64,000 nucleotides of DNA from IMG/VR virus record IMGVR_UViG_3300025364_000003, positions 124,001 through 188,000 of that record. One strand, 5' to 3'. Below, piece by piece: positions 1,934 through 61,531 of the stretch. How positions within the stretch are numbered: position 1 is the stretch's first letter; every line of letters starts with the position of its first letter. Made by a program: the position numbers and the translations under genes. The notes beneath the pieces were generated by a model that saw only the letters and a program-made list of their open reading frames with translations, was not told the origin of the DNA and did not search any database.

Positions 1934-3619
1934 TTAACGAATTCCGCTTCCCTCTTCAGCTTCAAGCTCGTTAGGTTTTCTAACGAGCTTTTTCTTTTCT
2001 ATATCATGACCCTTCACTTGTCCGACGTCTCTTAAATCGAACCCTGGCATTAGTGCAATTTTTTGCTTTGGAAAGCTTCCTCTTGCATTTGCATAACATG
2101 CTTGTCCAACAATCTCGGTAAAGGCTGCTGGAATTGCTTTTTTGGGCAAGAGTTTAGCATGTGCATTGAAAGCGGCCACTTCCCCTTTGTCACTAAAATC
2201 CACATTAGCCAAGATGTGAACAATATAATCATGAACAGCTCTAAACTTCAGATTTTGTTCAGGTGTAAACACATCATGTTGATTATAATCAGTTGATATT
2301 TTCAAAACGCCAGTTTTTTTAACTTCTTCGGACATTTCTTTCTGCGAATTATAAGGTTGCCCAGGAACAAACTCAACCTTTACCTTGGAAAGCATTCTCT
2401 GATACATTTTCTCAATATGTGAGATTAGTGCTTTATACGATGCAACAGCCTCAGGATCATAATCTGGGAGTTCATCATATGCATCTGCTACTAACTCACA
2501 ATATTTCTTGTAATTTGATAGAACCATTTTTTCTTGCAGGTGTCGGTCAAATCTTGCCTGGCTTTCATTTAGAGAATTGTGGACAACTTTGCCTGAGCGC
2601 TTATCAACAACCTTGAAATTGGGACTCCAAAATTTGGAGTAATCTGAAATGAATTGCTGCGGAAGGTTCCCATAGACAAGCTCAAGCACTTGTCCACGTC
2701 CTAAAACGATGGCAACAATTTTGTTTCGACCACTGAAACCAACTGGTTCTGTAATTCTTAAGGTTGTTTGCAGGCGCCACTCATCTTCTTTTGGAGGGAG
2801 CGCAAATTTTCTATATCTTTGTGAAAGCTTATCAAGAGCTTGTAAAAACTTCTTTTCTCCTTCTATAACATTAAATGTAGGGATTTCATTTTTCTGGTAC
2901 ATTTCTTGTGCAATTTCTCTAGCCTTTTCCCAATCCATCTTTTGTTCTAGGGCGTATTCATACGATTCAATATAGGCTTGCTTCGCCCTACCTTTCTTCA
3001 TGTCAACGTGACCCAAAACTCTTTCCATGGCTGCATCGAAAGTGTCTTGCATCATCGCCTTGTCCATTGGCATTTTTTCACTTGTCTTGAGTTTGTTATG
3101 CAAATTTGTGGCGAAGTCGGACATAAGTTCTTTATAAAAATTTGGGTCAGCATCAATGGTGCCTTTGGCCATTGGCACCGCTAAATCTAAATCTCTAGCA
3201 CCAAAATGTGAGCGTAACGCTTCTGCGAATGCTCGTTGTACAGGCATACGAACATCGTCTTCATCTGCTTTGGCAGATTGGGGCACGAGCTGAGCTACAA
3301 CAATCATCATTCGGCTTTCGCCACCAGTTGACATGGCATCTCTAGCAGAGCTATAGGCAGTTACAATGTTGTCAGTCCAATAGCTACCTTTCAGGGAATG
3401 CATTGACGGGCTTAGAATGGAACTCGCTTCAAGTTCTTCTTCGCCTTTCCAGCGACCTTCGGTTGGGTCTGGAATCATTCCGAGTTGGTAAATTTTTGGC
3501 AGATGTTTTGAACTTGTCCCGTGATACATTATCACGGGTTTTGCCCTCTTCCGCTCAAGAAGAAAATCAACTTCTTCTTTTACCAGTTTTTTGATGATAT
3601 TTTTGAGGTTATCGTTCAC
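1934..3619 (-). CDS. putative internal head polyprotein: leader + ADP-ribosyltransferase-fold domain + second conserved domain
   Basis: Leader LKNIIKKLVKEEVDFLLE; MYHGTS..L..I...G..P...GSYWT ART-like motif; second domain with FRAVHDYIVH...GE..AF..H...FTEIVGQ after SLNE/HLQE sites. Confidence 0.6.
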   Translation of the reverse strand: MNDNLKNIIKKLVKEEVDFLLERKRAKPVIMYHGTSSKHLPKIYQLGMIPDPTEGRWKGEEELEASSILSPSMHSLKGSYWTDNIVTAYSSARDAMSTGGESRMMIVVAQLVPQSAKADEDDVRMPVQRAFAEALRSHFGARDLDLAVPMAKGTIDADPNFYKELMSDFATNLHNKLKTSEKMPMDKAMMQDTFDAAMERVLGHVDMKKGRAKQAYIESYEYALEQKMDWEKAREIAQEMYQKNEIPTFNVIEGEKKFLQALDKLSQRYRKFALPPKEDEWRLQTTLRITEPVGFSGRNKIVAIVLGRGQVLELVYGNLPQQFISDYSKFWSPNFKVVDKRSGKVVHNSLNESQARFDRHLQEKMVLSNYKKYCELVADAYDELPDYDPEAVASYKALISHIEKMYQRMLSKVKVEFVPGQPYNSQKEMSEEVKKTGVLKISTDYNQHDVFTPEQNLKFRAVHDYIVHILANVDFSDKGEVAAFNAHAKLLPKKAIPAAFTEIVGQACYANARGSFPKQKIALMPGFDLRDVGQVKGHDIEKKKLVRKPNELEAEEGSGIR

Positions 3620-24272: not shown

Positions 24273-25610
24273 ATGGCCAAGAAAACATTCGTACTTGACA
24301 CAAACATTCTTTTAGCCGACCCAAACGCAATTTTTTCTTTTGAAGAAAACGAAGTTATTTTACCTTTTGTTGTTCTGGAGGAACTTGATAAGCATAAGTC
24401 CAACCAAGGAGAGATTGGCCTCAGCGCACGTGAAGTAAGTCGTCAATTGCATGACTTATTAAAGGTTGCCGATAGACAAACTATGAAACGTGGCATTTCG
24501 CTACCTAATGGTGGCAAGTTGAAAGTTGTTTCTTCCTCAGGACAATCCGATCTTTTTGACAAAGAGCTTGCAGCAGATAAAGCAGACAATCATATTCTAG
24601 CGGTTTGTCTTGGACTGAAAAACAAAAAAGTTATTTTAGTCACGAACGACATGCTTCTTAGGGTAAAGGCAGATGCCTATGGCATTGCCAATGAAAATTA
24701 TAGAAAAAATGTCATAGCCAAAAACATTGAAAGCATGTATTCAGGCATCAGAGAACTGAATGTCACGAAATCTGTATTGCATGAACTTTGGCAAAAATAT
24801 AGAGACAAGGACAGTTTAACGAATTTTATCAATGATAAAATTGATAACTTAAAACCAAATGAATTTGTTCATATAACAAACGGTGGATCAAATAAGCCAT
24901 TTTTAATTCGAAAGCAAAACGATTCAATCAGGTTCGTACCCGAAGGCTTTGAATTGTCGAAAGTGAAACCTCGCAATCTAGAACAGAGACTTGCTTTTGA
25001 TCTTCTTATGGACAATTCTGTCAACCTTGTTTCTATCGTAGGAAGCGCAGGAACAGGCAAGACATTAATTACTCTTGCGGCAGGACTCGAACAAGTTGTA
25101 GACAAAAAGAAATACAAATCATTGCTTGTGTGTCGGCCAGTTCAACCTCTTGGAAAAGACATTGGTTATCTTCCAGGAAGCAAAGAAGAAAAGATGGAGC
25201 CATGGATTGCCCCCATAAAAGACAATCTTCGTTTTCTTCTTACAAGTGATGGAAGAAAGTCTAGGAATAGCGAGAACAGTCTAAATTACTACTTCGATAT
25301 GGGAATCATCGAGGTTGAGGCAATGACCTACATTCGAGGTCGCTCTATTGCCAATGCATATATGATCATTGATGAAGCACAGAATTTGTCAGCTCATGAA
25401 TTGAAAACAATCATTACACGAGTGGGCGAAGGTACCAAGATTGTACTAACTGGCGACATTGAACAGATTGACAACATGTACGTTGATTCTGTTTCAAACG
25501 GACTTGCTGTTGCCGTTGAGAGGTTCAAGGAACATGACATAGCTGGTCATATTACCTTGAAGAAGGGCGAACGAAGCAAGTTGGCAACTTTAGGTTCAAA
25601 AATATTGTGA
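24273..25610 (+). CDS. phoH: PIN-PhoH (PhoH2-like) ATPase
   Basis: FVLDTNILL PIN domain; GSAGTGKT, IGYLPG, RGRS, IIDEAQN, TRVGEG.K...GD..QID motifs. Confidence 0.95.
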   Translation: MAKKTFVLDTNILLADPNAIFSFEENEVILPFVVLEELDKHKSNQGEIGLSAREVSRQLHDLLKVADRQTMKRGISLPNGGKLKVVSSSGQSDLFDKELAADKADNHILAVCLGLKNKKVILVTNDMLLRVKADAYGIANENYRKNVIAKNIESMYSGIRELNVTKSVLHELWQKYRDKDSLTNFINDKIDNLKPNEFVHITNGGSNKPFLIRKQNDSIRFVPEGFELSKVKPRNLEQRLAFDLLMDNSVNLVSIVGSAGTGKTLITLAAGLEQVVDKKKYKSLLVCRPVQPLGKDIGYLPGSKEEKMEPWIAPIKDNLRFLLTSDGRKSRNSENSLNYYFDMGIIEVEAMTYIRGRSIANAYMIIDEAQNLSAHELKTIITRVGEGTKIVLTGDIEQIDNMYVDSVSNGLAVAVERFKEHDIAGHITLKKGERSKLATLGSKIL

Positions 25611-48905: not shown

Positions 48906-49610
48906 ATCGCACGCTTATTCATTACGCCCCGTGAGCAGCAGCTAATCAACGACTGGACTAAAGAGTTCGTGAAAGACGTTGTTGGTCAGTACATTTGGTA
49001 CTATCCAATTTCAATTCTTAAATCGGACGTTCATCCGGTGTATGATGAAGCGATCGTTAAAATATTTGATAATCCCATCAAGATTGATGCTTTGGTCGAT
49101 CAACCAGACAGGGGGCAATCCATTGGCAAATGGACAGTGGAAAGCACAACTACTATTTCTGTTTACGTTCAAGTCAGAGATTTGATTGACAAGGGTTTTT
49201 CACCAGACATTGGTGATTATTTTGTTTATGGTGAAGATGTTTTTGAAATTAATGTCATTATGCAAATGGGTGATGCTTTTGGTCAGGCAGAATATGATGT
49301 ATATTGGAAAATAGATGGCAAACTTGCTCGCTCGGGACGATTTGATCTTCCACAATTTAAAAAGCTTCTTGAAGATAGGAAAGTGTTTGAAGAATCGCAA
49401 GTTCAGAAAAGATTTGAGCAACAGCGTGGACTCAAGGAAAACACTGAGGACGGAGCAACTGGTGATGTCCGTCAGGTTAGAGAACGACTTGCTGACGACA
49501 TGGCACCTATCGCTCTCAATGAAGGCCCGAGAACTGTAAATCCTGAAGATGAAGAAGATACCTCCGATACTACTGGTAAGAAGGCTTCATCTTCTTTTTA
49601 TAATGAATAG
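48906..49610 (+). CDS. head-closure/neck protein (T4 gp14-like), probable ATC start
   Basis: In-frame extension (M)ARLFITPREQQLINDWTKEFVKDVVGQ after GAGAGG; VYDEA..K.F..P, P.IGDYF.YG..FEI. Confidence 0.65.
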   Translation: MARLFITPREQQLINDWTKEFVKDVVGQYIWYYPISILKSDVHPVYDEAIVKIFDNPIKIDALVDQPDRGQSIGKWTVESTTTISVYVQVRDLIDKGFSPDIGDYFVYGEDVFEINVIMQMGDAFGQAEYDVYWKIDGKLARSGRFDLPQFKKLLEDRKVFEESQVQKRFEQQRGLKENTEDGATGDVRQVRERLADDMAPIALNEGPRTVNPEDEEDTSDTTGKKASSSFYNE

Positions 49611-49634: not shown

Positions 49635-50126
49635 ATGGCACAAAATTCTATAAAGAAGCCGTCTAAGCCTCGACGTCGAAGAAGCAAAAAGAAAAGCGGT
49701 GGGAGGGGTCACTACAAAACCGGTTATCACACTTCTCCTAAGTGTTCCAATGGCCCAGCAAAATATCGCTCTGGTTGGGAGAAAGTTGTTTGCGAAAGCT
49801 TGGATGCAGATCCGGATGTTGTAGAATATCAATACGAACCTTTTGAGATCAAATACGTTTCTAATCACAGAACTGGAAGAATAAGAATCTACATTCCTGA
49901 TTTCTTAATCACATACTCTTCCGGAGATAGAAAATTGGTTGAAGTTAAGAGAGAGAAGCATCTTGAACGACCAACAGTCAAAAAGAAAGCGTTGGTTGCA
50001 AGAGCTTATGCAAGCCGTAACGGTATGGAGTATCAGTTTTGGACAGAAAAGAAAATCAAGGAACTCCAGAAGATGCTAAAGAGTTCGAAGACCTCTTTGA
50101 CGAAAGCGAAGACGAACGAGAAATAG
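49635..50126 (+). CDS. head-completion nuclease (T4 gp4/TnsA-N-like PD-(D/E)xK)
   Basis: YRSGWE...LD.DP.V..Y.YE...I.Y...YIPDF...LVEVK. Confidence 0.85.
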   Translation: MAQNSIKKPSKPRRRRSKKKSGGRGHYKTGYHTSPKCSNGPAKYRSGWEKVVCESLDADPDVVEYQYEPFEIKYVSNHRTGRIRIYIPDFLITYSSGDRKLVEVKREKHLERPTVKKKALVARAYASRNGMEYQFWTEKKIKELQKMLKSSKTSLTKAKTNEK

Positions 50127-50707
50127 TAGACATAGGTCTCGATATTTCCACAAGTATTGTTGGTCTTGTAGTTTTGAATGCAACCACCAACGATCTTATC
50201 AAGATGGATGCAATTAAGCTCACCAGCAAAAAGTATTCAGATACCTGGGACAAGGGGACTCGTGTTGAAAAGGAACTTGCTAGGATTGTTGATCTAGAAA
50301 AGTATGTTGTCAACCACATTTTTGTGGAAGAAGCTCATATGAAGTTTACGCCAGGATTTTCTAGTGCAAAGACTTTGTTTTCCCTTGCATGCTTCAACGG
50401 TATTGTTTCATTTACAGCTTATAAGTTGTTTGGTGTGAAACCAAAAATGATCAATGTAAGAACTGCTCGTAAAAACCTTGGGATTAAGATCAACTATAAG
50501 GACAAGTCCAAGGACACTAAAACAAAGATATTTGAAGCGGTCAAAAAAATGAACCCGCATTTCCCGTGGGCTAAACATGTAGCTAAAGGTGGAAAGAAAA
50601 AAGGTCAAACTGTGTGGAGTAAACACAATTTTGATATGGCAGATGCTTGGATTATATGCGAAGGCGGTCGTCGAACAATAAACCCTTCTGGTAAAAAGAA
50701 ACGCTAA
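50039..50707 (+). CDS. RuvC-like Holliday junction resolvase
   Basis: IGLDISTS..G, IFVEE, L..FNGIV, DMADA; TTG start 8 nt after GGAG. Confidence 0.8.
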   Translation: MDRKENQGTPEDAKEFEDLFDESEDEREIVDIGLDISTSIVGLVVLNATTNDLIKMDAIKLTSKKYSDTWDKGTRVEKELARIVDLEKYVVNHIFVEEAHMKFTPGFSSAKTLFSLACFNGIVSFTAYKLFGVKPKMINVRTARKNLGIKINYKDKSKDTKTKIFEAVKKMNPHFPWAKHVAKGGKKKGQTVWSKHNFDMADAWIICEGGRRTINPSGKKKR

Positions 50708-50708
50708 T

Positions 50709-51091
50709 ATGGAACCTGGTGATATCGTTGTAGCAAAACGGTTAATATACCATGAAGGAATCAATATCAAAGGTGTTTGGTCATCTCCTAGTAGTCATGA
50801 ATCAAATCTTGTTTTGGCGATAAAATTTCTGTTTATTCTCATAAAGAAGCTTATTTGTTTACCGTATTGAGTGAAGGGCGTACGTTAGAAAAACATTATT
50901 CGGGTTATGAAGAATTTTCTAAAGAAGTTCTTCATGTTTCTAAAATTAAAGGGATGGTAATTGACTTCGATCCATTGGGTTCAAAAAGACCCCATATTGA
51001 AGGAATAGCAGCAGTTTTAATTGAAGACAAGGTTTGGTGGATAGTTGCTGGCGATCTTCAAGTAGTAAAGTTAGGCAAGGGTAAGCAATGA
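50709..51091 (+). pseudogene. hypothetical gene with apparent 1-nt frameshift near 50805
   Basis: MEPGDIVVAKRL...SSHES appears to continue as SCFGDKISVYSHKEAYLFTVLSEG in the frame of ORF 50855-51091. Confidence 0.45.
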
Positions 51092-51735
51092 GTGCAACCG
51101 GAAGAAAAAAACACAACTCTAAAGGGAAGGCCGAAGAACGTGATCCTTTCGATTATTATCCTACGCCAAATTGGTGCATAAAACGCTTTGTAGAAAAAGC
51201 ATCGCACAGGTTGCCAGTTGGTAATTGGATTGAACCAGCAGCTGGCGATGGCGCAATCATACGTTCTATCACCTCTTATGGTAAGGGATATGAGAAAGTT
51301 CAATGGACTTCGGTTGAAATTCAAGATAGATTTAAAGAATCGCTTGAGGAAGTATCTGATAAAGTTTGTATTGGAAATTTTGCGTCTTATTTACATCCAG
51401 GCTCAAAAGCCGACGTGTGCATTACCAATCCTCCATACAAACTTGCTGAGTCAATGATTAAACATGCACAGACTCAGGCTAAATCCGTTGTTATGTTGTT
51501 GCGAATTAACTTTTTGGCAAGTGAAAAAAGACGTGATTGGATGGAACAAGATACTCCTGACATTTATGTTATTCCAAATCGTCCTTCGTTTCGTGGTAAA
51601 GGTTCTGACGCTACTGAATATGCTTGGTTTGTGTGGGACGATAAATCGTGTGGTAGAATTTTCATACTCGATTCAACGCCTCGGGGCGTGCGACAAGCAG
51701 AAAAGAAGGCTTTGAGACAAAAGCAAACTATTTAA
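51088..51735 (+). CDS. DNA N6-adenine methyltransferase
   Basis: DYYPTP, IEPAAGDGAI (SAM motif I), ITNPPY (motif IV), YAWFVW. Confidence 0.9.
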   Translation: MSATGRKKHNSKGKAEERDPFDYYPTPNWCIKRFVEKASHRLPVGNWIEPAAGDGAIIRSITSYGKGYEKVQWTSVEIQDRFKESLEEVSDKVCIGNFASYLHPGSKADVCITNPPYKLAESMIKHAQTQAKSVVMLLRINFLASEKRRDWMEQDTPDIYVIPNRPSFRGKGSDATEYAWFVWDDKSCGRIFILDSTPRGVRQAEKKALRQKQTI

Positions 51736-51742
51736 TGTTGCT

Positions 51743-52489
51743 GTGTTACTCAAAGAATATATAAACTATCAAGTTGCTAGTGTCTTGCTCGAAATCAGAG
51801 GCACGTTCAAGTGGAATGAATTTAAGGCACTTAGTACCCTAGACCAAAAACTTCAATACGCTCAACAACATCTCAAGGAGCTTGGAAGAGGTAGCAGCAG
51901 GGCTGCCTTCCTACTAAGCAATCGATATGTTTTAAAGATTGCCCTTCCTCAAGCGGCAGAAAAGGGAATGGGGCAGAACAAAGGCGAGCTTCAGGTCTTT
52001 GCTAATACGGCAAGCAAGAATTATGTAACCGCTATTCATGACGCTGGCGAAGATGGCCATTGGCTCGTTTCAGAAATTGCACGACCACTTGCAAGCACAG
52101 AAGAATTTCAGAAGCTCACAGGGGTTCCCTGGGAACAGTTTGTTTCTATACTGAAAAATCATGAAGATATCAAGAGTGAATTTAGCGAGATCGAACAGGG
52201 CATTCAAATGTGGTCTCGTCGTCTCAAAAATGCTCAATCGCAGGGTAATGAAGCGGGTATTGACAAGTTTACAAAGAACGTTCAAAACCTTCAGCAAAGA
52301 AAAACAAACCTTCAAAAAATGTTAAATTCACCAGTGGTACAAGGTGCTCTTGCTTTGATGAATCAAGCTGGTGTTATGCGTGGTGATATTCTTGAAGTGG
52401 ATCATTGGGGCAAAACCGCTGATGGTCGTGTAGTTCTATTAGACTACGGCTTTACAGAGGACTTGGTTGACCTTTACCGAGCTGCATGA
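51743..52489 (+). CDS. protein-kinase-fold enzyme, paralogue 1, with leader
   Basis: LGRGSSR Gly-loop, VLKIA Lys, QN..E helix C, D....HWG catalytic loop, LLDYG; leader LKEYINYQVASVLLE. Confidence 0.8.
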   Translation: MLLKEYINYQVASVLLEIRGTFKWNEFKALSTLDQKLQYAQQHLKELGRGSSRAAFLLSNRYVLKIALPQAAEKGMGQNKGELQVFANTASKNYVTAIHDAGEDGHWLVSEIARPLASTEEFQKLTGVPWEQFVSILKNHEDIKSEFSEIEQGIQMWSRRLKNAQSQGNEAGIDKFTKNVQNLQQRKTNLQKMLNSPVVQGALALMNQAGVMRGDILEVDHWGKTADGRVVLLDYGFTEDLVDLYRAA

Positions 52490-53283
52490 TGAGACTGAAA
52501 GAACAAATACGCTTCATGGTTTTTCAAACACTTCATGAAATTAGGAGTAATTTCAAGTGGTCTGAATTTAAAAAGATAGATGATCACTTTGACAGGGCCT
52601 TGTACCTTATAAACACTGGTACTCAAGTATTAGGGGAGGGAACTTCACGTCTTGTATTTTTGTTAAGCAATAGGTTTGTGCTCAAACTAGCCCAACTAGC
52701 CCAACCTCTTCCACGTTCTCCTCGTAGTTTTGAGAGAGGGAAGGCGCAAAACAAATATGAAGTAGATTTGTCTACCGATCCAGATGTAAAACCAATTGTG
52801 GCCGAAGTCTATGATGCGGCCGATGATTACTCGTGGATTGTTTCGGAGTTGGTTCGACCAATAAAAAATATAAATGAATTTAAAGATTTAACTGGGTTTT
52901 CGTTCACTGATTTTCGCCAGGTTCTTAAACTTGTTTTTGAGGGCGAACTTGAAAATACCATTGAGAAACATCGCAAATTGCGACAGAGGTATATCGAAGA
53001 GATCAATCGACTTGACTCTGAAGATACGGCCGATAAAACAAATATTGAATACTACAAAAGCCAACTTGAGGCTATTGAAAAAGTTATTGAATATCAAACT
53101 GAATTACCCGAACACCCAATGGTACAAGCTGCTATTGAATTAATTTCTGATAAGGGTGCAATGGCTGCCGATATGATCGTGTTAGACCACTGGGGCAAAA
53201 CTGCCGATGGCCGTGTAGTTTTGTTGGATTATGGTTATTCGAGAGATGTAGCTAGAAAACATTATGATGTTACGTGGATCTGA
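52486..53283 (+). CDS. protein-kinase-fold enzyme, paralogue 2, with leader
   Basis: LGEGTSR, VLKLA, QNKYE, DMIVLDHWG, LLDYG; leader LKEQIRFMVFQTLHE. Confidence 0.8.
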   Translation: MMRLKEQIRFMVFQTLHEIRSNFKWSEFKKIDDHFDRALYLINTGTQVLGEGTSRLVFLLSNRFVLKLAQLAQPLPRSPRSFERGKAQNKYEVDLSTDPDVKPIVAEVYDAADDYSWIVSELVRPIKNINEFKDLTGFSFTDFRQVLKLVFEGELENTIEKHRKLRQRYIEEINRLDSEDTADKTNIEYYKSQLEAIEKVIEYQTELPEHPMVQAAIELISDKGAMAADMIVLDHWGKTADGRVVLLDYGYSRDVARKHYDVTWI

Positions 53284-53307
53284 ACAAACAAAATCATATA
53301 TATTGTT

Positions 53308-54017
53308 ATGTTAGTTGCAAATCTTAAAGAACAAATACATTTCATGGTGTCGCAAACTCTTTTAGAAATTAGGAGTAATTTCAAGTGGTCGGAGTTTAAA
53401 GAACTTGAAACTCCTAAGGGAATGGCATATTACCTAGAAAAAACAGGCACCGAAAAACTAGGCAGCGGGTCTTCTAGATGGGTTTACTTATTGAGCAACC
53501 GCTATGTCTTAAAATTAGCTGATCCTTTAAATCCTCGTAGGGGACTGGCCCAAAATCATGCAGAACTTGAAGTTGCAACCGACTCAGTGTAGCTCCATTC
53601 GTGTCGCAAATTTTTGATTATGATCCTGATGGTTTCTGGTTGGTATCTCAACTTGTTAGACCATTGAATAGCGATGAAGATTTTGAAAAACTAACTGGTG
53701 GAATCGACTGGGAAGCATTTCAGTATGCCGTACAAACTTTTTTGTATGAAGCTAGGGGGGATTTTAAAAAAGCTGCTGATGAACTTGAGTTTAGGGCATC
53801 AAGGAGAAATTCTGATCATTATGCAGAAGTATTACTCAAGGCTCTTTCATATCTTAAGACAAACAAGTGGGTGAGAAATTTTCTAAAAATGGCAAAAAAA
53901 TACGATTTGCTTCCAGAAGATTTAACATTTTTAGATCATTGGGGCAAAACCGCTGATGGACGTGTAGTGCTTCTTGACTATGGTTATACGGCATTAGTTC
54001 ATGATCTACACTACTGA
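53308..54017 (+). pseudogene. protein-kinase-fold enzyme, paralogue 3, split by a 1-nt frameshift near 53588
   Basis: 53308-53592 has leader, GSGSSR, VLKLA, QNHAE; 53601-54017 has WLVSQ, DLTFLDHWG, LLDYG; one added base gives a continuous ATDSxVAPFVSQ matching STDPDVKPIVAE. Confidence 0.75.
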
Positions 54018-54086
54018 CAATTCTCTATTGTCTAAACAATTATTTCTAAAATGCGTTCGACGTGGGTTTACTTACTATTTACCCAT

Positions 54087-55304
54087 ATGTCCGGCAATGA
54101 AACTCGACAGAATATCCCAAGAGATCCAAGGAATCCTGAACCACATGTAGATTCTGGATATGAGGGTGACGATACCTCGGATACGTTTTTGATTCCGCCA
54201 GTTGGAATTGAAGATGCGGACATGACTCTGTTCAGACTTTTTGACAAAGATATTGGATTTACTGTTCGATTAGTAGAGACGGCAAACAAAGATATCCAGA
54301 TTAAAAAGCCTTTTGTAATTTTCGCTACTGGTGAACGATTTGTGCTTGCAAAGCGATTGCGTCCACCAAGAGATAGAAACGACAAATTGATGCTTCCGGC
54401 CATTTCTATCCGAAGAACATCTATTGAACAAACATCGCTGGACATTACTGGCAGAGGTATCAATCAGTTTACTGGCAATCTTGTCATTAAGCGACGTCTT
54501 GAAAAGGGAGACAGGGATTACCAAAACTTTATTAATAAGCTGGGGTTTAAAAACTTAAAAAATTCTTATTCTACCGAAAGAGAAACAGGCGAACTGAAAA
54601 ACGACGTTTCGGTGCAGCAAGGCGGGCTTTTAGAACAGAGAACCAGTTTGAATAACATGTGGGAAATTATCACAGTACCACAGCCACAGTTTTTTACTGC
54701 AACATACGAAGTAACTTTTTGGACTTCGTTTACCCAACACATGAATTATATGATAGAAACGTTTATCTCATCGTTTCTACCAAACGATAGAATACACAAG
54801 TTGGTAACCGACAAGGGTTACTGGTTTCTTGCTTACACGCAAGAACAGTTTGCGAATCAAGAAAATATTGATGATTTCACTGAAGATGAAAGAATTTTGA
54901 GGTACTCTTTCAATGTTCAGGTTAAAGGTTATATTTTCGCACCACAGCATCCAACTAATGCTGTTCCAGTGAGAAGATGGATTTCATCGCCAACGGTAGT
55001 TTTCGACGTAAGTTCATATTCTACCGAAGTGTTGGAGAAGGAACATCTAAATCGTCCACCGCAAAAAAACAAGGACAATCCGGAAAATTTCACATTGACA
55101 GACATTGAACTGGATCCCCAAACAAAACAGACTCCAACAACAAATGAAAGATTCGCTGTTCGAAAAGATATAATCGACCCGATCACAGGAAAGAGGAAGC
55201 GTCGTTACGTATCTATTTTAGAGTCCAATGAAAAAAAGGGAGAGACAGTTTACAGGGCATCCGACGTTGAAACATTGGAAGAGTTTATCAAGACACTCAA
55301 ATAA
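54087..55304 (+). CDS. tail terminator / sheath stabiliser (T4 gp15-like)
   Basis: ATGERF, LPAISIRR, P.P.F....YEV..W....HMN..IE motifs; immediately before sheath; start likely ATG 54087 after TATTTA. Confidence 0.6.
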   Translation: MSGNETRQNIPRDPRNPEPHVDSGYEGDDTSDTFLIPPVGIEDADMTLFRLFDKDIGFTVRLVETANKDIQIKKPFVIFATGERFVLAKRLRPPRDRNDKLMLPAISIRRTSIEQTSLDITGRGINQFTGNLVIKRRLEKGDRDYQNFINKLGFKNLKNSYSTERETGELKNDVSVQQGGLLEQRTSLNNMWEIITVPQPQFFTATYEVTFWTSFTQHMNYMIETFISSFLPNDRIHKLVTDKGYWFLAYTQEQFANQENIDDFTEDERILRYSFNVQVKGYIFAPQHPTNAVPVRRWISSPTVVFDVSSYSTEVLEKEHLNRPPQKNKDNPENFTLTDIELDPQTKQTPTTNERFAVRKDIIDPITGKRKRRYVSILESNEKKGETVYRASDVETLEEFIKTLK

Positions 55305-55385: not shown

Positions 55386-58300
55386 ATGGTTAGCCAAATT
55401 TTTAACTTTCCAGGCTTCTTCGATAGAGAAATCGATCTAACAGCCCAGATTCAGGAGCCAGTAGGCGTTCCAGCTGGTGTAATTGGTGGTGCCGAACGTG
55501 GTCCGGCATTCGTCCCATTCACTGTTGGATCATTTGCTGATTTCCGAACTCGCTTCGGCGATCTAAATCCAAGATATGCTGCGCCATACGCAGTCGATAG
55601 ATTCCTGGAAAACAGGACAGCACTTACCTTCATCAGAATTCTTGGTGCGGGTGCCAATGAGACGTCAAGTGATATCGAGACAACTCGTTTGCAAGGAACA
55701 GTCAAAAATGCTGGATTCCGTCTAAGTGGAACTCTCAGTTCCGTTAACCCAGCTACTACTAATGGTGCTGTTCAATTCCTCGTCGCTCGCCACGTTGTTA
55801 CTGCTTCAGAAGCACTCGGAATGCCGATGTTTTCTGACAATAATTCACTTCTTACCTCGGGTTCGAACGACGAGGTTTACCTTACTCGTGGTGTTATTTT
55901 CGCTGCGTCAGGTACTCGAATTCAAATTCTAAATGGAGATGACAGCAACGAGCAGTACAGCAGCTTTGTTGATGACGTTGCAACTGTAAACTCTGCAAGC
56001 AGAGAATTCAAAATTGTTATTTCTTCATCGGCTGGTGCGTCGTTTGGCAATGACGACGGATTCCCTGGCGTTAGAATTCTAACCGCTTCTCTGAATCCAA
56101 GTTCTGATAACTACTTTGCCAAGCTGATGAATACTGATCCAGAAAGGTTCAGCGACGAAAAACATGTGGTCTATGCTGATTATGCAGTCGATGCCGAACT
56201 CGCAAATGTTGGCACTGGAAGCGGCGATGTTGCTATTGCAAGCGGTAGCATTAACACTTCTTCTACTTCTGGCAACACCTCTCTTCCATTCCTAGAGGCG
56301 TTCGGTCGTTTTGACACCAGATTCACAACTCCAAAAACACCTTGGTTTATCTCGCAACCATATGGCAAAACTGAGTATGACCTCTTTTACATTGAAGCTG
56401 TTGATGATGGCGCATACGCAAATCAGCGTTTCAAGATTTCTATCACCAATCTTCTCAAGTCTTCAAATGTTCGTGATAAACACGGAACTTTCACACTTGT
56501 TGTAAGAACATTTGATGATACAGATGCCGAACCACAGATTCTTGAGCAGTTCAACAACCTTTCTCTTGATCCGGATTCGGACAACTACATTGCTAAGGTT
56601 ATTGGAGATAAGCGTGCTCGCTTCAACTTTGACGCTGAAGCTGAAGAAGATCGTCGCCTTCTCACCACTGGCAAGTTTGAAAACAGAAGCCGATACATTC
56701 GAGTATTTGTTTCTGACCAGGTAGCACAAAAGAAGATTCCTGAAGATGCTGTTCCATTCGGCTTCCGAGGAACTGCTCCATTGAGCACCAACTCACTTCT
56801 TTCTGATACTGCTGGGTCGGCGGCCCTAGCAAGACTTGCTTTGTCGGGTGCAACTGATCCACGTCTTGCGTGGTCTATAGTACCTCCTCTTCCATACCGT
56901 TATAAGGTAACAAGAGGAAATGCAGCAACCAATCCGGGTTTCGAAGGTGCTCCAGGAGCAACCGAATTAACTGATGCACGTTATTTTTGGGGGGTCAAGA
57001 CTTCTAGAAACACCAACGCACTGAATCCAAACATTGTCAATCTTCCAAACCAGTTGGTCAACAGCTACACTAAGTTTGCAGGTATTGAAAAACTTGATGT
57101 ACTTGTTACAGGTTCAGCTAAAGATGATTTCAACAACAATAAGTTTACGCTTGCTCGTGTTGCGCTAGGAAATGCATCACTCAATGATGTTACATCATCA
57201 GCCGCAATCCACATGAAAGAAGCTGCTTATCTTCGTAACAGAACGCCAGATGGGTTCGAATACAAGATAACTGATGAAATTTCTGGTCTGGATAGAATTA
57301 CATTTGCCACCCTTTACCAAAAGGGCACGTCTGCTGCCGACTTCAACAAGTTCACCAACTTTGCAAAGTTTACCTCTATTCTATATGGTGGTTTCGATGG
57401 CGTCAACATTCTTGATAAGAATGCAGCTACATTTAATGACCGTTCCACTTCAACAGAAACTGCTGGAAGCGAGGTTGGAAATGCAGCATCTACTTTCACT
57501 TCACCTGGACTTAACGAGAACGTAAACGGATTTGGTACTTCAAACCAGACTGTTTTCGCTTATCGAAGAGCTTCAGAGATTATCACTGATGCAATCGCAT
57601 CTAACATCAATCTGCTTACTATTCCAGGTCAGCGTGATCCGTTGGTCACAGACTTTGCTGCTGATGAAGTTCGTGACTTTGGTCTTGCTTTCTATGCCAT
57701 GGATTTACCAGCATATGACTCTGATGGTAACAGAATTTGGGACAATCAAACTTCAAGATTTATCGACATCGAACAGACTGCAAATAACTTTGAGCAGCGT
57801 GCTCTTGACAATGAGTTTGCAGGTGCTTACTTCCCAGATTTCGTACTTGAGGATGATGTAAACAGGCGCAGAGTAACCGTTCCAGCTTCTGTTGGAGCAC
57901 TTGCAGCACTTGGATTCAATGACCGTGTTGCTTATCCTTGGTTCGCACCAGCAGGCTTCAACAGAGCAGCTCTTGATTTTGTACAGCTTACAAAGACAAG
58001 AATTAAGCAACCAGAACGTGAACGTCTTTTTGACATTCACATTAACCCAATCGTCAAATTCCCTGGCGAATCTGGTTTCGTAATCTTCGCACAAAACACG
58101 CTTGAACAAGCCGAGTCTGCGCTCGGCAGTATCAATGTTGTTCGAATGTTGAATGAACTCAAGCGCAGGATAATCGAGATTGGCAACCGAGCAATCTTCG
58201 AACAGATTACTCCGGAAATTTACACTGAACTTGATAGGAGATTCCGCAGCGTTCTTAACCTCATTTCGGCTCGTGCTGGTATTGAGAGATTTGATGTCAT

Positions 58301-58445
58301 CGTTGATGGCAGAAACAATACAAACCTTGATCGTGAGAACAATAGAGTCAATGCTCGAATTGTGCTCGTTCCAACGAGGGCGGTTGAGTTCATTGCAATT
58401 GACTTCATCATTACTAGAAGCGGCGTGTCGTTCGATGCCGTATAA
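55386..58445 (+). CDS. tail sheath protein 1 (T4 gp18-like)
   Basis: PGF..REIDL, AGVIG.AERGPAFVP, GGFDG, YFP, PWFAPAGFNR, INPIV.F, INV.R, P.RAVEFI.IDF. Confidence 0.93.
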   Translation: MVSQIFNFPGFFDREIDLTAQIQEPVGVPAGVIGGAERGPAFVPFTVGSFADFRTRFGDLNPRYAAPYAVDRFLENRTALTFIRILGAGANETSSDIETTRLQGTVKNAGFRLSGTLSSVNPATTNGAVQFLVARHVVTASEALGMPMFSDNNSLLTSGSNDEVYLTRGVIFAASGTRIQILNGDDSNEQYSSFVDDVATVNSASREFKIVISSSAGASFGNDDGFPGVRILTASLNPSSDNYFAKLMNTDPERFSDEKHVVYADYAVDAELANVGTGSGDVAIASGSINTSSTSGNTSLPFLEAFGRFDTRFTTPKTPWFISQPYGKTEYDLFYIEAVDDGAYANQRFKISITNLLKSSNVRDKHGTFTLVVRTFDDTDAEPQILEQFNNLSLDPDSDNYIAKVIGDKRARFNFDAEAEEDRRLLTTGKFENRSRYIRVFVSDQVAQKKIPEDAVPFGFRGTAPLSTNSLLSDTAGSAALARLALSGATDPRLAWSIVPPLPYRYKVTRGNAATNPGFEGAPGATELTDARYFWGVKTSRNTNALNPNIVNLPNQLVNSYTKFAGIEKLDVLVTGSAKDDFNNNKFTLARVALGNASLNDVTSSAAIHMKEAAYLRNRTPDGFEYKITDEISGLDRITFATLYQKGTSAADFNKFTNFAKFTSILYGGFDGVNILDKNAATFNDRSTSTETAGSEVGNAASTFTSPGLNENVNGFGTSNQTVFAYRRASEIITDAIASNINLLTIPGQRDPLVTDFAADEVRDFGLAFYAMDLPAYDSDGNRIWDNQTSRFIDIEQTANNFEQRALDNEFAGAYFPDFVLEDDVNRRRVTVPASVGALAALGFNDRVAYPWFAPAGFNRAALDFVQLTKTRIKQPERERLFDIHINPIVKFPGESGFVIFAQNTLEQAESALGSINVVRMLNELKRRIIEIGNRAIFEQITPEIYTELDRRFRSVLNLISARAGIERFDVIVDGRNNTNLDRENNRVNARIVLVPTRAVEFIAIDFIITRSGVSFDAV

Positions 58446-58501: not shown

Positions 58502-61500
58502 ATGACTCAAATTAATTTCAAAAGTGCAGGAGTTTCAGCCAGGGTTATCAACCTTACTGGCCCAACAGCAATTCAACCTGTTGGAATCCCAGCTGGTGTG
58601 ATCGGAACTGCTGTAAAGGGACCTGCATTTGTTCCTGTAACTTTTGCAACAACGCAGGACTTTACGGTTGTATTCGGACTTCCAGAAGACAACAAGGCAA
58701 ATGGACCACTTGCTGTGGGCGAGTGGCTTCGTAATAGACAAGCAGCAACTTACCTTAGGGTTCTTGGTGCTGGTCAAGCCAAGAGAAGAGAACAATCTGG
58801 AGAGAATCAGGGTAAAGTTCAGGGTGCAGGTTTTGTTGTTGGTGACGAACAGCCACAAGCTGGTGGAGCATTGGATAACAACATGTACGCCAATGAAGGG
58901 GGACCTCTAGGGCGTTTGTATTTCCTAAACACCTTTATGTCAGAAGCAAACGGTTCGGGTTTTCTTACTGACGCTGGTCTCCCTGGTGAGGGAACGCCAA
59001 TCGTTAGGGCAGTTCTTTTAGCTGCTTCCGGTGTTATCATCACCCTTTCTTCGTCACTTTCTGCATCGACAATGGTTCCAGGAGCAGCTCCAGCGTCAAA
59101 CCTTGTTGCCACAGAAGAAAATAAGAGCGGTTCATTCCTAGGCTCCGTCAACCTCTCCGGCGGCAGACAGGAATTTGTGATGTTCTTGAATGGTCACAAG
59201 GGAACTGATCCTCTATTTCCCAATGTCATTACTGCATCTTTTGATGTTGACGCACCAAATTACCTTGGCAGTGCCCTTAACACCGATCCTTTCAACCTTG
59301 AAAAGGCAGGTTACTTGCTTTATGCCGATTACTCGGTTCATCCAAACCTTGCAACCGTTACTGGTTCTTCTGTGGTCGATACCACTACTGATGAAGTTGT
59401 AGGTGGAGGTTTGGCAGCTGGATTTGAACCAATCGCATTCTTGGCAACTGGTTCATTGTCTCGAAACTCCGGCTCAACCGTAGTACCAAGTTATGAAAAC
59501 TGGGAAGATAGATACACTACGCCAAAATCACCTTGGATTGTTTCACAGAGGCTTGGCGGCAAGCCAAGAAATCTCTTCAGAATTCATCTTTTGGATGACG
59601 GTGCTTGGGGCAACGATCAGGTCAAATGGTCTGTTGAAAACATTGTTCCGGCAATCAATGATGTAAACCCTTATGGAACTTTCGACCTTCTCATCCGTCG
59701 TTTCAACGACATCGATAAGAAACGTGAGGCAACTGAGGCTTGGAGAGGGCTTTCACTCAATCCAAGCTCCGACAATTACATTGCTAGAGTGATTGGTGAC
59801 CTCAACACCTTCTACAACTTTGATGCTGCCGAAGGTAACCAGAAGATTCAAACTACTGGCGAGTATCCAAACCAGTCCAAGGTTATCAGAGTAGAAGTCT
59901 CGCCAGACGTTGAAAACGTTGAGTTGGATGCTTCGGCTCTTCCGCTTGGTTTCAGAGGAATTCCACACTTGGTAACCTCGGGAACTGCACCATTGGCTCC
60001 ATTAGGCGAAGCACTTGCAGACAGCGTTCTTATTACTGGCTCTTCTGATCCAGCTCACAATGTCGTACAGATGCCAGTTCAGTTCCGCAGAAGCCTTAAC
60101 CTTGGTTCGGTTACCAGCCGTCGTGTAGACAAGGGCCTCTATTGGGGTATTCAGTTTACTCGTCAGCTTTCAGTTGAAGAGCCAAACTCAACAACCGAGC
60201 CAGAAAGAACTATTGCCAACTTCACCAAGTTCTTCCCTAAGCATCAGACTGATTGGTTGAATGTTGTCGTCAGCGACAATGAAGGAGTGGCAGATGCGGC
60301 AGAAACCGGTATTCTTGATGCGGATAGGTTCAATAACAACCTATTCTCTCTTGAGAACATCAGGATCGTAAGAGATCCGATCACGAATCTTGCTGACACT
60401 ACCCAGCTTGTAAGTTGGAGTTATGTAAGAGCCGGAAACGTAGCTACCTCTGGTTCGGTTAGAGCATTGACAGCTGACGATTTGTCGGATTCATCTGTAA
60501 GGCAGGTTGCTAAGTTCAGCGGAATTATCCAGGGCGGATTTGATGGTGTTAGAATCTTTGATGAAGACACTGCCAATCTTACCAACCTCGCAATTATCGA
60601 AGAAATGGACAACACAAACAGGGGAGTGTCGAATGGTCCTACCGTAAAGGCTTATGATACCGCTTTGGATATCATTGCCGACGACACCGAAACTGATATC
60701 CAACTTCTTACCATCCCAGGAATTAGACATCCACAGATCACCGATGACGCTCTACAGCTTATCGAGGAAAGATTTGATGCAATGTACATCATGGATCTTC
60801 CAGAGTATGACACCACAAATCAACTCGTTACTGCTTCCTCACAGGATTTGAGCGTTAGATTTACCGCAAATCAGCACCGTGATCGAGGTTTGAACACTTC
60901 CTTCGGAGCAGCTTACTTCCCAGACGTAATCTTGAGGGATACACTCAACAACACTATTCGACAGGTTCCGCCTTCGGTTGCTGTTCTTGGTGCATTCGGT
61001 CTCAATGATGCAGTCGGATTCCCATGGTTTGCCCCAGCAGGTTTTGCACGTGGCGCCCTACAGACAACTGAAGAATCTACGCTTCCATTGTCCCGTGACA
61101 ACATGGATGCGCTTCAAGATGTCAAGATTAACCCACTTGTATCCTTTGCAGGATCGGATGGTGTTGTAGTCTGGGGTCAGCGTACTCTACTTGCTCGTGA
61201 TTCTGCACTTGAGAGAGTCAATGTACGTAGACTTCTCATTCAACTTAGAAGAGATGTTCGCCGTGTTGCTCGACGCTTCGTATTCGAACCTGGTCGTGCC
61301 GAAACGCTTGCAAGATTTTCTCAGTTGGTAAACCCAATCTTGAAGAGGGTGCAGGACCAGAGAGGCGTGGAGAGATTCCTTGTAAGAATTGACACCACAA
61401 CTACTACACAAGCCGACATTGAAAACAGAACGGTTCGTGGAAAGATTTTCCTTGTTCCAACCAGAACTTTGGAATTCTTGTCCATCGACTTCGTCGTTAC

Positions 61501-61531
61501 CAATCAAGGCAATTTCGTTTCATCGCAATAA
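58502..61531 (+). CDS. tail sheath protein 2
   Basis: SAGV, AGVIGTA.KGPAFVP, PWFAPAGFARG, INP, VWGQRTL, RVNVRRL, PTRTLEFL.IDF. Confidence 0.93.
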   Translation: MTQINFKSAGVSARVINLTGPTAIQPVGIPAGVIGTAVKGPAFVPVTFATTQDFTVVFGLPEDNKANGPLAVGEWLRNRQAATYLRVLGAGQAKRREQSGENQGKVQGAGFVVGDEQPQAGGALDNNMYANEGGPLGRLYFLNTFMSEANGSGFLTDAGLPGEGTPIVRAVLLAASGVIITLSSSLSASTMVPGAAPASNLVATEENKSGSFLGSVNLSGGRQEFVMFLNGHKGTDPLFPNVITASFDVDAPNYLGSALNTDPFNLEKAGYLLYADYSVHPNLATVTGSSVVDTTTDEVVGGGLAAGFEPIAFLATGSLSRNSGSTVVPSYENWEDRYTTPKSPWIVSQRLGGKPRNLFRIHLLDDGAWGNDQVKWSVENIVPAINDVNPYGTFDLLIRRFNDIDKKREATEAWRGLSLNPSSDNYIARVIGDLNTFYNFDAAEGNQKIQTTGEYPNQSKVIRVEVSPDVENVELDASALPLGFRGIPHLVTSGTAPLAPLGEALADSVLITGSSDPAHNVVQMPVQFRRSLNLGSVTSRRVDKGLYWGIQFTRQLSVEEPNSTTEPERTIANFTKFFPKHQTDWLNVVVSDNEGVADAAETGILDADRFNNNLFSLENIRIVRDPITNLADTTQLVSWSYVRAGNVATSGSVRALTADDLSDSSVRQVAKFSGIIQGGFDGVRIFDEDTANLTNLAIIEEMDNTNRGVSNGPTVKAYDTALDIIADDTETDIQLLTIPGIRHPQITDDALQLIEERFDAMYIMDLPEYDTTNQLVTASSQDLSVRFTANQHRDRGLNTSFGAAYFPDVILRDTLNNTIRQVPPSVAVLGAFGLNDAVGFPWFAPAGFARGALQTTEESTLPLSRDNMDALQDVKINPLVSFAGSDGVVVWGQRTLLARDSALERVNVRRLLIQLRRDVRRVARRFVFEPGRAETLARFSQLVNPILKRVQDQRGVERFLVRIDTTTTTQADIENRTVRGKIFLVPTRTLEFLSIDFVVTNQGNFVSSQ

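Follow-up and report, generated by a model that had tools for sequence, protein, structure and literature searches.

What kind of enzyme is encoded by three neighbouring genes in the tail region of a giant uncultured phage, and which purpose might several versions of it serve? The question is raised by positions 51743-54017 of the stretch of DNA analysed here (the window, 64,000 nucleotides, corresponding to positions 124,001 to 188,000 of the IMG/VR record IMGVR_UViG_3300025364_000003), whose carrier is a phage of ~461 kb. The genes, termed c1, c2 and c3, are adjacent paralogues which, as the other parts of the array and its borders described below, are located on the plus strand. Their relationship is evident in pairwise tblastn comparisons (E values of 1e-47 to 1e-20), and the same program detected no fourth copy in the 64-kb window. 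The genes c1 (51743..52489, 248 amino acids with a GTG start) and c2 (52486..53283, 265 amino acids, with a start overlapping the stop of c1 in the sequence ATGA) are intact, and c3 (53308..54017) is broken by a frameshift. An earlier note, made from the sequence alone, had already recognized three neighbouring paralogues at this site, which our comparisons confirm, but it had overlooked the lesion in the third copy. We consider it on balance probable that c1-c3 are tandem paralogues of minimal protein kinase-like (PKL) enzymes of phages, with an accessory role in host takeover or counter-defence.

Predicted fold and conserved motifs

AlphaFold2 models of c2 and c1, calculated from 80- and 84-sequence alignments, show predicted local distance difference test scores (pLDDT) of 94.1 and 93.2, respectively. 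In both models, the N-terminal part consists of three helices, strands 1-3 with a Gly-rich loop between the first two of them, and a long helix C. Strands 4 and 5 and the hinge come next and lead into a pair of short helices, the long antiparallel helical hairpin and one further helix. The chain ends with the catalytic Asp on a short turn, followed by a beta hairpin, the DYG motif and one short terminal helix. The variable helical hairpin extends over ~residues 132-199 in c1 (52136..52339, with model helices 140-167 and 170-194) and ~residues 142-213 in c2 (52909..53124, with model helices 155-175 and 181-209). This organization matches in part the bilobal fold of PKL proteins, with a five-stranded N-lobe, helix C and a helical C-lobe containing the catalytic and metal-binding loops.

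In Foldseek searches of the PDB, the top matches of both models are almost all PKL kinases, including APH(2''), MTR kinase, PknB, WbdD, PRPK/Bud32 and phosphorylase kinase, together with a few structures of SAICAR synthase (probabilities of 0.9-1.0, E values of ~1e-4 to 1e-2). The best matches of c1 are APH(2''), MTR kinase, PRPK and PknB, and PRPK reaches the highest TM-score of the top PDB matches listed (0.38-0.43). A search of BFVD returned first unnamed proteins of the jumbo phages RaK2 and CBB and then annotated phage kinases, including T7-like ones. In the ESM Atlas, the family falls into virus-only unnamed clusters, whose named neighbours belong to kinase families only (Phage_T7_kinase, Pkinase, Kinase-PolyVal, YrbL, APH and OspG), and structure matches to Pkinase, RIO and APH clusters show TM-scores of 0.39-0.46. 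The models and the Foldseek matches thus bear out the kinase-like fold that had been proposed from the letters alone. A sequence-profile search of the PDB yielded a sole match, to the effector kinase SteC, which is below threshold and covers the Gly-loop and the strand-3 Lys.

Conservation was computed over 80 relatives with identities to c2 of 25-57%, and the numbering of c2 is used in the following. The motif residues of c2 are R55, K67, Q88, E92, D229, H235 and D248, and the catalytic-type residues of c1 are K65, E82, D215, H221 and D234. Invariant among the 80 sequences are R55 of a GxGSSR motif, K67 of a VLK motif, Q88 and E92 of a QNxxE motif, D229, G237, V245, L247, and D248 and G250 of the DYG motif, and a second group, comprising G50, G52, N89, W117, E121, R124, H235, W236, K238 and T239, is present in at least 90% of them. 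The Gly-loop, the strand-3 Lys, the helix-C Glu, the catalytic Asp and the DYG Asp follow each other in the order expected for PKL proteins on the predicted secondary structure, and the family, judged from its alignment, has every residue of the Lys/Glu/Asp/Asp set found in active phosphotransferases.

The motifs G.G.SR, VLK(I/L)A, QN..E, W.VS and LLDYG, which had been read from the three translations, are indeed found in all three copies. A further motif described as D-x4-HWG retains its HWG after the Asp, but its spacing is D-x5-HWG. The canonical Asn at the fifth position after the catalytic Asp is absent, this position being variable (D in 31, E in 16 and G in 10 of the 80 relatives, among other residues), and the sixth position is occupied by His in 72 of the 80. 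H235 is located 13 residues before the DYG Asp, directly ahead of the next strand. In PKA, Asn171 and Asp184 are separated by the same distance. It is thus plausible from the spacing to the DYG Asp that, as the earlier note had held for all three copies, a His takes the place of the catalytic-loop Asn of kinases, although in a loop that is one residue longer, of the form D-x5-H instead of D-x4-H. The segment preceding the catalytic Asp contains an insert whose length ranges from 52 to 134 residues among the 80 relatives.

The domain ends at a median of 12.5 residues past the DYG motif in the 80 sequences, with one short helix following the motif in the models. Since the domain stops ~12 residues after DYG, it contains no activation segment. 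The proteins have no Pfam match that would place them in the Pkinase family (PF00069), and they lack the activation segment, the APE motif and helices F to I.

At the opposite end, residues 1-45 form three helices that are conserved across the family. These had been taken as a leader that tags the proteins, a view that we do not share, as the same helices also open the internal repeats of polypeptides with two to four domains and no other open reading frame (ORF) of the window carries them. The N-terminal helices are thus a structural extension of the domain, and their presence as part of a repeated unit argues against a terminal targeting signal.

Size of the family and relationship to known kinases

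At E <= 1e-3, a profile search of the full library identified 4,449 cluster representatives, and the stricter limit of E <= 1e-30 is passed by 1,031 of them. The Atlas clusters of the family are 92-100% viral, and a survey of 185,579 species genomes recovered four contigs of metagenome-assembled genomes with the family. Many carriers are contigs of 200-460 kb, and the contig of ~461 kb from which the window stems is IMGVR_UViG_3300005974_000004. No match was found among cultured phage records, neither by blastn with the region nor by tblastn with c2. Searches of Pfam, NCBIfam and PADLOC gave no meaningful match, no Pfam domain covers the family region in any member, and the T7-kinase profile does not match either. 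The sole named match is PHROG 4301, annotated as 'unknown function' (E = 3.6e-15 for c1), and the names of cluster members are uninformative ('hypothetical protein', with one labelled as DNA-directed RNA polymerase). Some polypeptides hold two to four complete domains, and the relatives P0095, P0096 and P0100 from other metagenomes and the one at positions 656-2047 of L080 include single polypeptides with three to four of them. One relative (P0064) contains an ART-PolyVal ADP-ribosyltransferase as fusion partner, and DUF5661 precedes the kinase-fold domain in another one. As far as can be judged from these searches, the family is a large, almost phage-only and so far unannotated clade of minimal kinase-fold proteins.

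Truncated kinases are known to occur in polyvalent proteins (PMC5512222), and the closest concept to our family is Kinase-PolyVal (PF18762; Iyer et al. 2017, PMC5512222), a phage-borne group that has likewise lost the C-terminal subdomain while keeping the active site. Kinase-PolyVal was assigned to the Ser/Thr/Tyr-kinase superfamily and described in stand-alone and clustered copies, with a cassette-like variability having been proposed (PMC5512222). Both the loss of the C-terminal subdomain and the context of phage conflict, by which a member of this group would be recognized, are found in our family; the fusion to ART-PolyVal adds to the likeness, and Kinase-PolyVal is a feature neighbour in the ESM Atlas (score of 0.93, rank 27). 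Conversely, no kinase model of Pfam, in a set that is assumed to include PF18762, was matched by the window proteins at E <= 1 or by the 80 members at E <= 0.01. Its published signatures, a Glu ahead of strand 2, a Gln in the N-lobe's final strand and an insertion separating the His from the Asp, are not recognized in our family, which unlike Kinase-PolyVal features the GxGSSR and W.VSELVRP motifs, no His-x-Asp and a large insert before the catalytic Asp. Kinase-PolyVal was reported mostly in phages and prophages of Verrucomicrobia-Chlamydia and Bacteroidetes.

A second point of reference is provided by the T7 kinase (T7K, gp0.7) and JSS1_004 of a Salmonella phage (PF27024), which are proven enzymes of host takeover and broad anti-defence (PMC13645617). 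As our proteins, they are compact phage kinase domains of almost phage-exclusive distribution with a divergent DFG-type motif; homologues of T7K occur in jumbo phages, and T7K is a neighbour of our family in structure and in feature space. A kinship to gp0.7 was nevertheless rejected, as hhalign yields a probability of 0.3 with either gp0.7 alone or 15 homologues and aligns only the Gly-loop and the Lys. In precomputed Pfam annotations, PF27024 is assigned to all listed relatives of T7K but to none of our 94. T7K contains D-x4-N and DPV where our family has D-x5-H and DYG, and it combines its kinase with a DNA-binding shut-off domain in a single early gene instead of an array. T7K and JSS1_004 are still the functional precedent, as phage kinases that disarm defences.

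The minimal bacterial effector kinases OspG/NleH and SteC, together with Bud32/PRPK and RIO, resemble our family in being kinase domains of ~200-250 amino acids without activation loop, and OspG is one of its neighbours in the ESM Atlas. They show no significant sequence relationship to it, retain helices after their DFG-equivalent and are devoid of both the three-helix N-terminal extension and the long pre-catalytic hairpin.

Turnover of the array and divergence of its genes

The break in c3 separates an N-terminal fragment of 94 amino acids (53308..53592, in frame 1, ending with the TAG at 53590-53592), which contains the N-terminal helices, the Gly-loop, the strand-3 Lys and helix C, from a C-terminal fragment (53586..54017, in frame 0, which is open after the TGA at 53568-53570) with strands 4-5, the hinge, the hairpin, the catalytic Asp, the sequence HWGKTADGR and DYG. 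If a start codon is required, the longest ORF of the C-terminal fragment opens with GTG and encodes 138 amino acids (53601-54017). At the frameshift site (53587..53588), two bases are found instead of a codon between TCA (Ser) and GTA (Val), and the first piece is matched by positions 2-89 of the family profile and the second by positions 91-218, with one position missing between them. Together, these observations indicate a 1-nt deletion at 53587-53588. A programmed frameshift was rejected, since a direct reading of the sequence at this site reveals no slippery heptamer, and slipping by -1 from GTG would not be cognate. The same pieces of 94 and 138 amino acids are called on at least 11 contigs from JGI, Logan and ENA assemblies, the C-terminal fragment is found on 5+11 contigs, and the frameshift is identical in the loci L005 and L006. 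No full-length c3 is contained in the 90% clusters of the two pieces. Because the same pieces recur across three assembly sources, the lesion is real and an assembly error is an unlikely cause of it.

In ~30 related IMG/VR loci, the genes follow the order of a 213-amino-acid gene, the kinase array, a 417-amino-acid gene and two sheath genes, with the arrays holding one to seven copies per locus. Seven copies are found within 8 kb of a 70-kb phage contig (positions 3-8093 of L050, IMGVR_UViG_3300033121_001410), four of them at the canonical site and three upstream of the 213-amino-acid gene. In a maximum likelihood tree of the arrays based on core columns, c1 groups with the first copies of the loci L007 and L081 (100% support) and c2 with copy 2 of L007 and copy 3 of L081 (95-99%), with the middle copy of L081 being sister to the c2 group (94%). 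The third gene, c3, is placed outside the c2 group (92%) and has no orthologue in L007 or L081. Of these two loci, L007 holds two copies only, and the extra copy of L081 differs from c3 and occupies another position; a further locus, L001, contains three intact copies. Lineage-specific clusters are found at 94-97% support, as in case of the four copies of L066 (97%). On the basis of these phylogenies, the array evolves by birth and death. Lacking from relatives and frameshifted in the window, c3 is dispensable.

Individual segments of the three genes have diverged to different extents. Identity between the paralogues amounts to 36-62% in the N-terminal helices, 41-48% in the N-lobe and 48-57% in the C-terminal part, compared to only 7-12% for the segment from the hinge to the catalytic loop. 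The helical insert was therefore correctly described as unrelated in each copy as far as its sequence is concerned, but not in its structure, since the hairpin shows the same topology in the models of c1 and c2. The divergence extends to orthologues, whose hairpins are 31-59% identical as opposed to 63-74% for the core (31-59% versus 72-74% in c1 and 32-35% versus 63-68% in c2), and the nonsynonymous divergence (dN) amounts to 0.35-0.69 in the hairpin and 0.18-0.30 in the core. With arrays of one to seven copies, a dN of the insert that is two to three times that of the core, and a turnover of copies between relatives, the notion of a duplicated and diversifying family has held up.

A different proposal of the earlier note, that conserved DNA ends drive the recombinational swapping of the insert, calls for a closer look at these ends. 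A conserved 5' segment (52495..52572, with copies at 51749-51826, 60% identical, and 53323-53400, 85% identical) encodes the first of the N-terminal helices. A string of 26 nucleotides at 52537 recurs, as had been noticed, at 53365; it occurs exactly twice, with none expected by chance. The conserved 3' segment (52400..52455, with copies at 53185-53240, 77% identical, and 53934-53989, 86% identical) encodes DHWGKTADGRVVLLDYG, which is the same in c1, c2 and c3, and a degenerate pattern of 35 nucleotides matches exactly at 52400, 53185 and 53934, with a chance expectation of 0. Although the pattern is thus present at all three sites, an identity of 77-86% over 56 nucleotides falls short of the near-identity that had been claimed. 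Since the differences are mostly located at third codon positions, the similarity is largely one at the protein level, reflecting an invariant peptide and not near-identical DNA.

Exchange between the copies was investigated by counting sites in a quartet of c1 and c2 with their counterparts in L007. In the C-terminal part, 17 sites support orthology, nine are 'concerted' and one is 'other', and the equivalent numbers for the N-lobe are 28, four and one. The excess of 'concerted' over 'other' sites in the C-terminal part hints at gene conversion, and so do three further observations: a 17-residue catalytic peptide is identical in c1, c2 and c3, with the orthologues of c1 carrying another version; the 26 nucleotides shared by c2 and c3 are identical where the orthologue of c2 differs synonymously; and c3 groups with c2 in its N-terminal part (86%) but not in its C-terminal part. 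Against a shuffling of inserts, the orthologous inserts are collinear in L007 and L081, identical tracts do not exceed 26 nucleotides and the support of the partition trees is moderate. A chimeric origin of c3 was rejected for the same reason, the trees resting on short segments with 65 columns. The data thus contain hints of short gene-conversion tracts at the ends of the array genes, and a swapping of entire inserts is not shown.

The array is located within the neck/tail module. Its upstream border is defined by the 213-amino-acid gene (p213, 48969..49610), which was identified by tblastn in 27 loci, in many of which it directly precedes the array, and which has no Pfam or PHROG match. On the downstream side, a gene of 417 amino acids (54051..55304) follows directly after the array in 31 loci. 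Its product has no match in Pfam or PHROG either, but its nearest ESM Atlas clusters carry PF16724 (score of 0.96, TM-score of 0.62), and it is a probable T4 gp15-like tail sheath stabiliser as judged from this model-based match. Two tail sheath paralogues of ~1,000 amino acids each, assigned to PHROG 23, are found at 55386-58445 and 58502-61531. They are ~30% identical to each other, as detected by tblastn through orthologues, and are paired in ~24 related loci.

Between p213 and the array, the window contains an accessory block (49635..51735) that is confined to the closest relatives and, according to PHROG and Pfam matches, comprises a TnsA-like endonuclease (PF08722), a RuvC-like resolvase, a 78-amino-acid ORF and a DNA methyltransferase. 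The RuvC-like ORF (50039-50707) is listed with a TTG start and in this form overlaps with the TnsA-like gene (49635-50126) by 88 nucleotides; as its orthologue in L007 starts ~25 codons further in, the true start in the window is probably near 50110-50120. Additionally, L007 contains an ORF of 291 amino acids on the opposite strand (2679-3554) that resembles a homing endonuclease of the GIY-YIG type. The presence of an endonuclease, a resolvase and a methyltransferase in the array gap suggests that the site is a plasticity hotspot within the neck/tail module, a setting that is typical of non-structural accessory genes. As to the remainder of the window, most large ORFs (903, 1,463, 847 and 656 amino acids) are without PHROG match, a PhoH-like gene is located at 24273-25610, and no tRNA was found.

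The hotspot bears on the proposal that the proteins carry an N-terminal leader, are packaged into virions and are injected together with the DNA. The position of the array just upstream of the gp15-like and sheath genes would be in line with such a route, as would the fusion of one relative to ART-PolyVal, a domain of proteins that are thought to enter along with the DNA (PMC5512222). However, the adjacency to tail genes is equally explained by a hotspot of this composition, and with the presumed leader being part of a domain that is repeated within fused polypeptides, injection remains unsupported.

Candidate functions of the array

From the described features, we infer catalysis, the class of the substrate and a biological role as follows. 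The proteins start with the three-helix extension, continue into a canonical N-lobe with GxGSSR, strand-3 Lys and helix-C Glu and the hinge W.VSELVRP, and have a C-lobe whose helices all come before the catalytic loop, among them the long and fast-evolving hairpin. They end with the catalytic Asp, the HWGKT.DGR hairpin and the metal-binding DYG motif, with no helices F to I. ATP would bind between the lobes, and its phosphate would be transferred to a substrate docked on the variable hairpin, which may occupy the place of the specificity subdomain of aminoglycoside-type kinases. As accessory enzymes of host takeover or counter-defence, the proteins would modify host or phage molecules and, if the T7 and JSS1 kinases are a guide, each paralogue would have a target of its own. 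Located at the probable hotspot, the array evolves through tandem duplications and losses of copies, to which short gene conversion may contribute on occasion. In the window, c1 and c2 are intact, and c3 has recently been inactivated by the 1-nt deletion and is dispensable.

Several observations weigh against this reading. The TM-scores to solved kinases are low (0.3-0.43) and the root-mean-square deviations large, with the fold superposing only in part, and the best solved matches are small-molecule kinases instead of protein kinases. The Asn of the catalytic loop is replaced by His or a variable residue, a His-x-Asp is absent, and canonical kinases have a loop that is shorter by one residue; such an atypical catalytic loop leaves room for another chemistry or a non-protein substrate. 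In the comparison of hairpin and core, synonymous sites are saturated (with a proportion of differing sites, pS, of 0.62-0.83), so that positive selection on the hairpin is not established. Finally, c1, c2, c3 and the gp15-like gene (with starts at 51743, 52486, 53308 and 54051) are devoid of Shine-Dalgarno-type motifs, which are present in 19 of the 44 plus-strand genes of the window. The tight spacing and overlaps of the array genes suggest that their translation may be coupled. A scan for promoters and terminators found fewer sites than in shuffles.

A more specific form of our interpretation, which we put forward tentatively and regard as unlikely in its entirety, would view the arrays as a repertoire with fast turnover, in which the hairpin recognizes targets and each paralogue disarms, by phosphorylation, a different protein of host defence or housekeeping.

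The preference for small-molecule kinases among solved structures leads to a rather improbable alternative, in which the proteins are phosphotransferases of the aminoglycoside or MTR kinase type that act on a signalling nucleotide, a metabolite or an anti-phage compound resembling an antibiotic instead of proteins, with the hairpin forming the pocket. The structures concerned are APH(2'')-IIa, -IIIa, -Ia and -IVa and MTR kinase, which match the models of both c1 and c2, with TM-scores of only 0.3-0.35. As our family, these enzymes have no activation segment and contain a helical subdomain, and in APHs the substrate binds between the core and the helical subdomains (PMC3691515). This location suggests by analogy a role of the hairpin in specificity and keeps a small-molecule substrate in play. 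However, none of the 80 members matches the APH profile (PF01636) at E <= 0.01, and the Brenner motif H-x-D-x4-N is absent, with the residue two positions before D229 being variable and no Asn at the fifth position after it. APHs also keep C-terminal helices after the DFG-equivalent, where our family ends. The extreme divergence of the hairpin, among paralogues as well as orthologues, is more readily reconciled with macromolecular targets that change than with a small ligand that stays the same, and the feature neighbours in the Atlas are mainly protein kinases (T7K, Pkinase, Kinase-PolyVal and OspG).

It is very unlikely that the proteins catalyse a non-kinase reaction, such as AMPylation or another transfer of nucleotidyl or glutamyl groups of the SelO or SidJ kind, or that they act as ATP-binding pseudokinases in the role of a scaffold or decoy. 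The His in place of the Asn, with one extra residue in the catalytic loop, the invariant Arg of the Gly-loop, the Gln-Asn pair beside the helix-C Glu and the loss of the whole substrate-binding C-terminal subdomain would be compatible with such a departure, whereas the invariance of the Lys/Glu/Asp/Asp set and the absence of SelO- or SidJ-type structural or profile matches among the top matches argue against it. In light of the arguments on leader, hotspot and collinear inserts given above, we finally consider the combination of injection with the DNA and the shuffling of inserts by DNA ends as highly doubtful.

The implications of the preferred reading of c1-c3 as minimal phage kinases concern the family at large. 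Phage kinases were shown only recently to be broad counter-defence weapons, as exemplified by T7K and JSS1_004, and our interpretation, if correct, would extend this group by thousands of kinase-fold genes that huge phages carry without annotation. Their architecture is unusual, with a C-lobe that is built before the catalytic loop and nothing following DYG, and may offer a compact natural scaffold to define the minimum requirements of the kinase fold. An activity as small-molecule kinase or another chemistry would, if true, be equally informative. The variable hairpins in arrays suggest a specialisation for targets, and if they constitute a repertoire, the family would be a modular and specific counterpart to the single hyper-promiscuous kinase of T7. 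The family may also provide a route to the function of a widespread part of the phage 'dark matter', represented by PHROG 4301.

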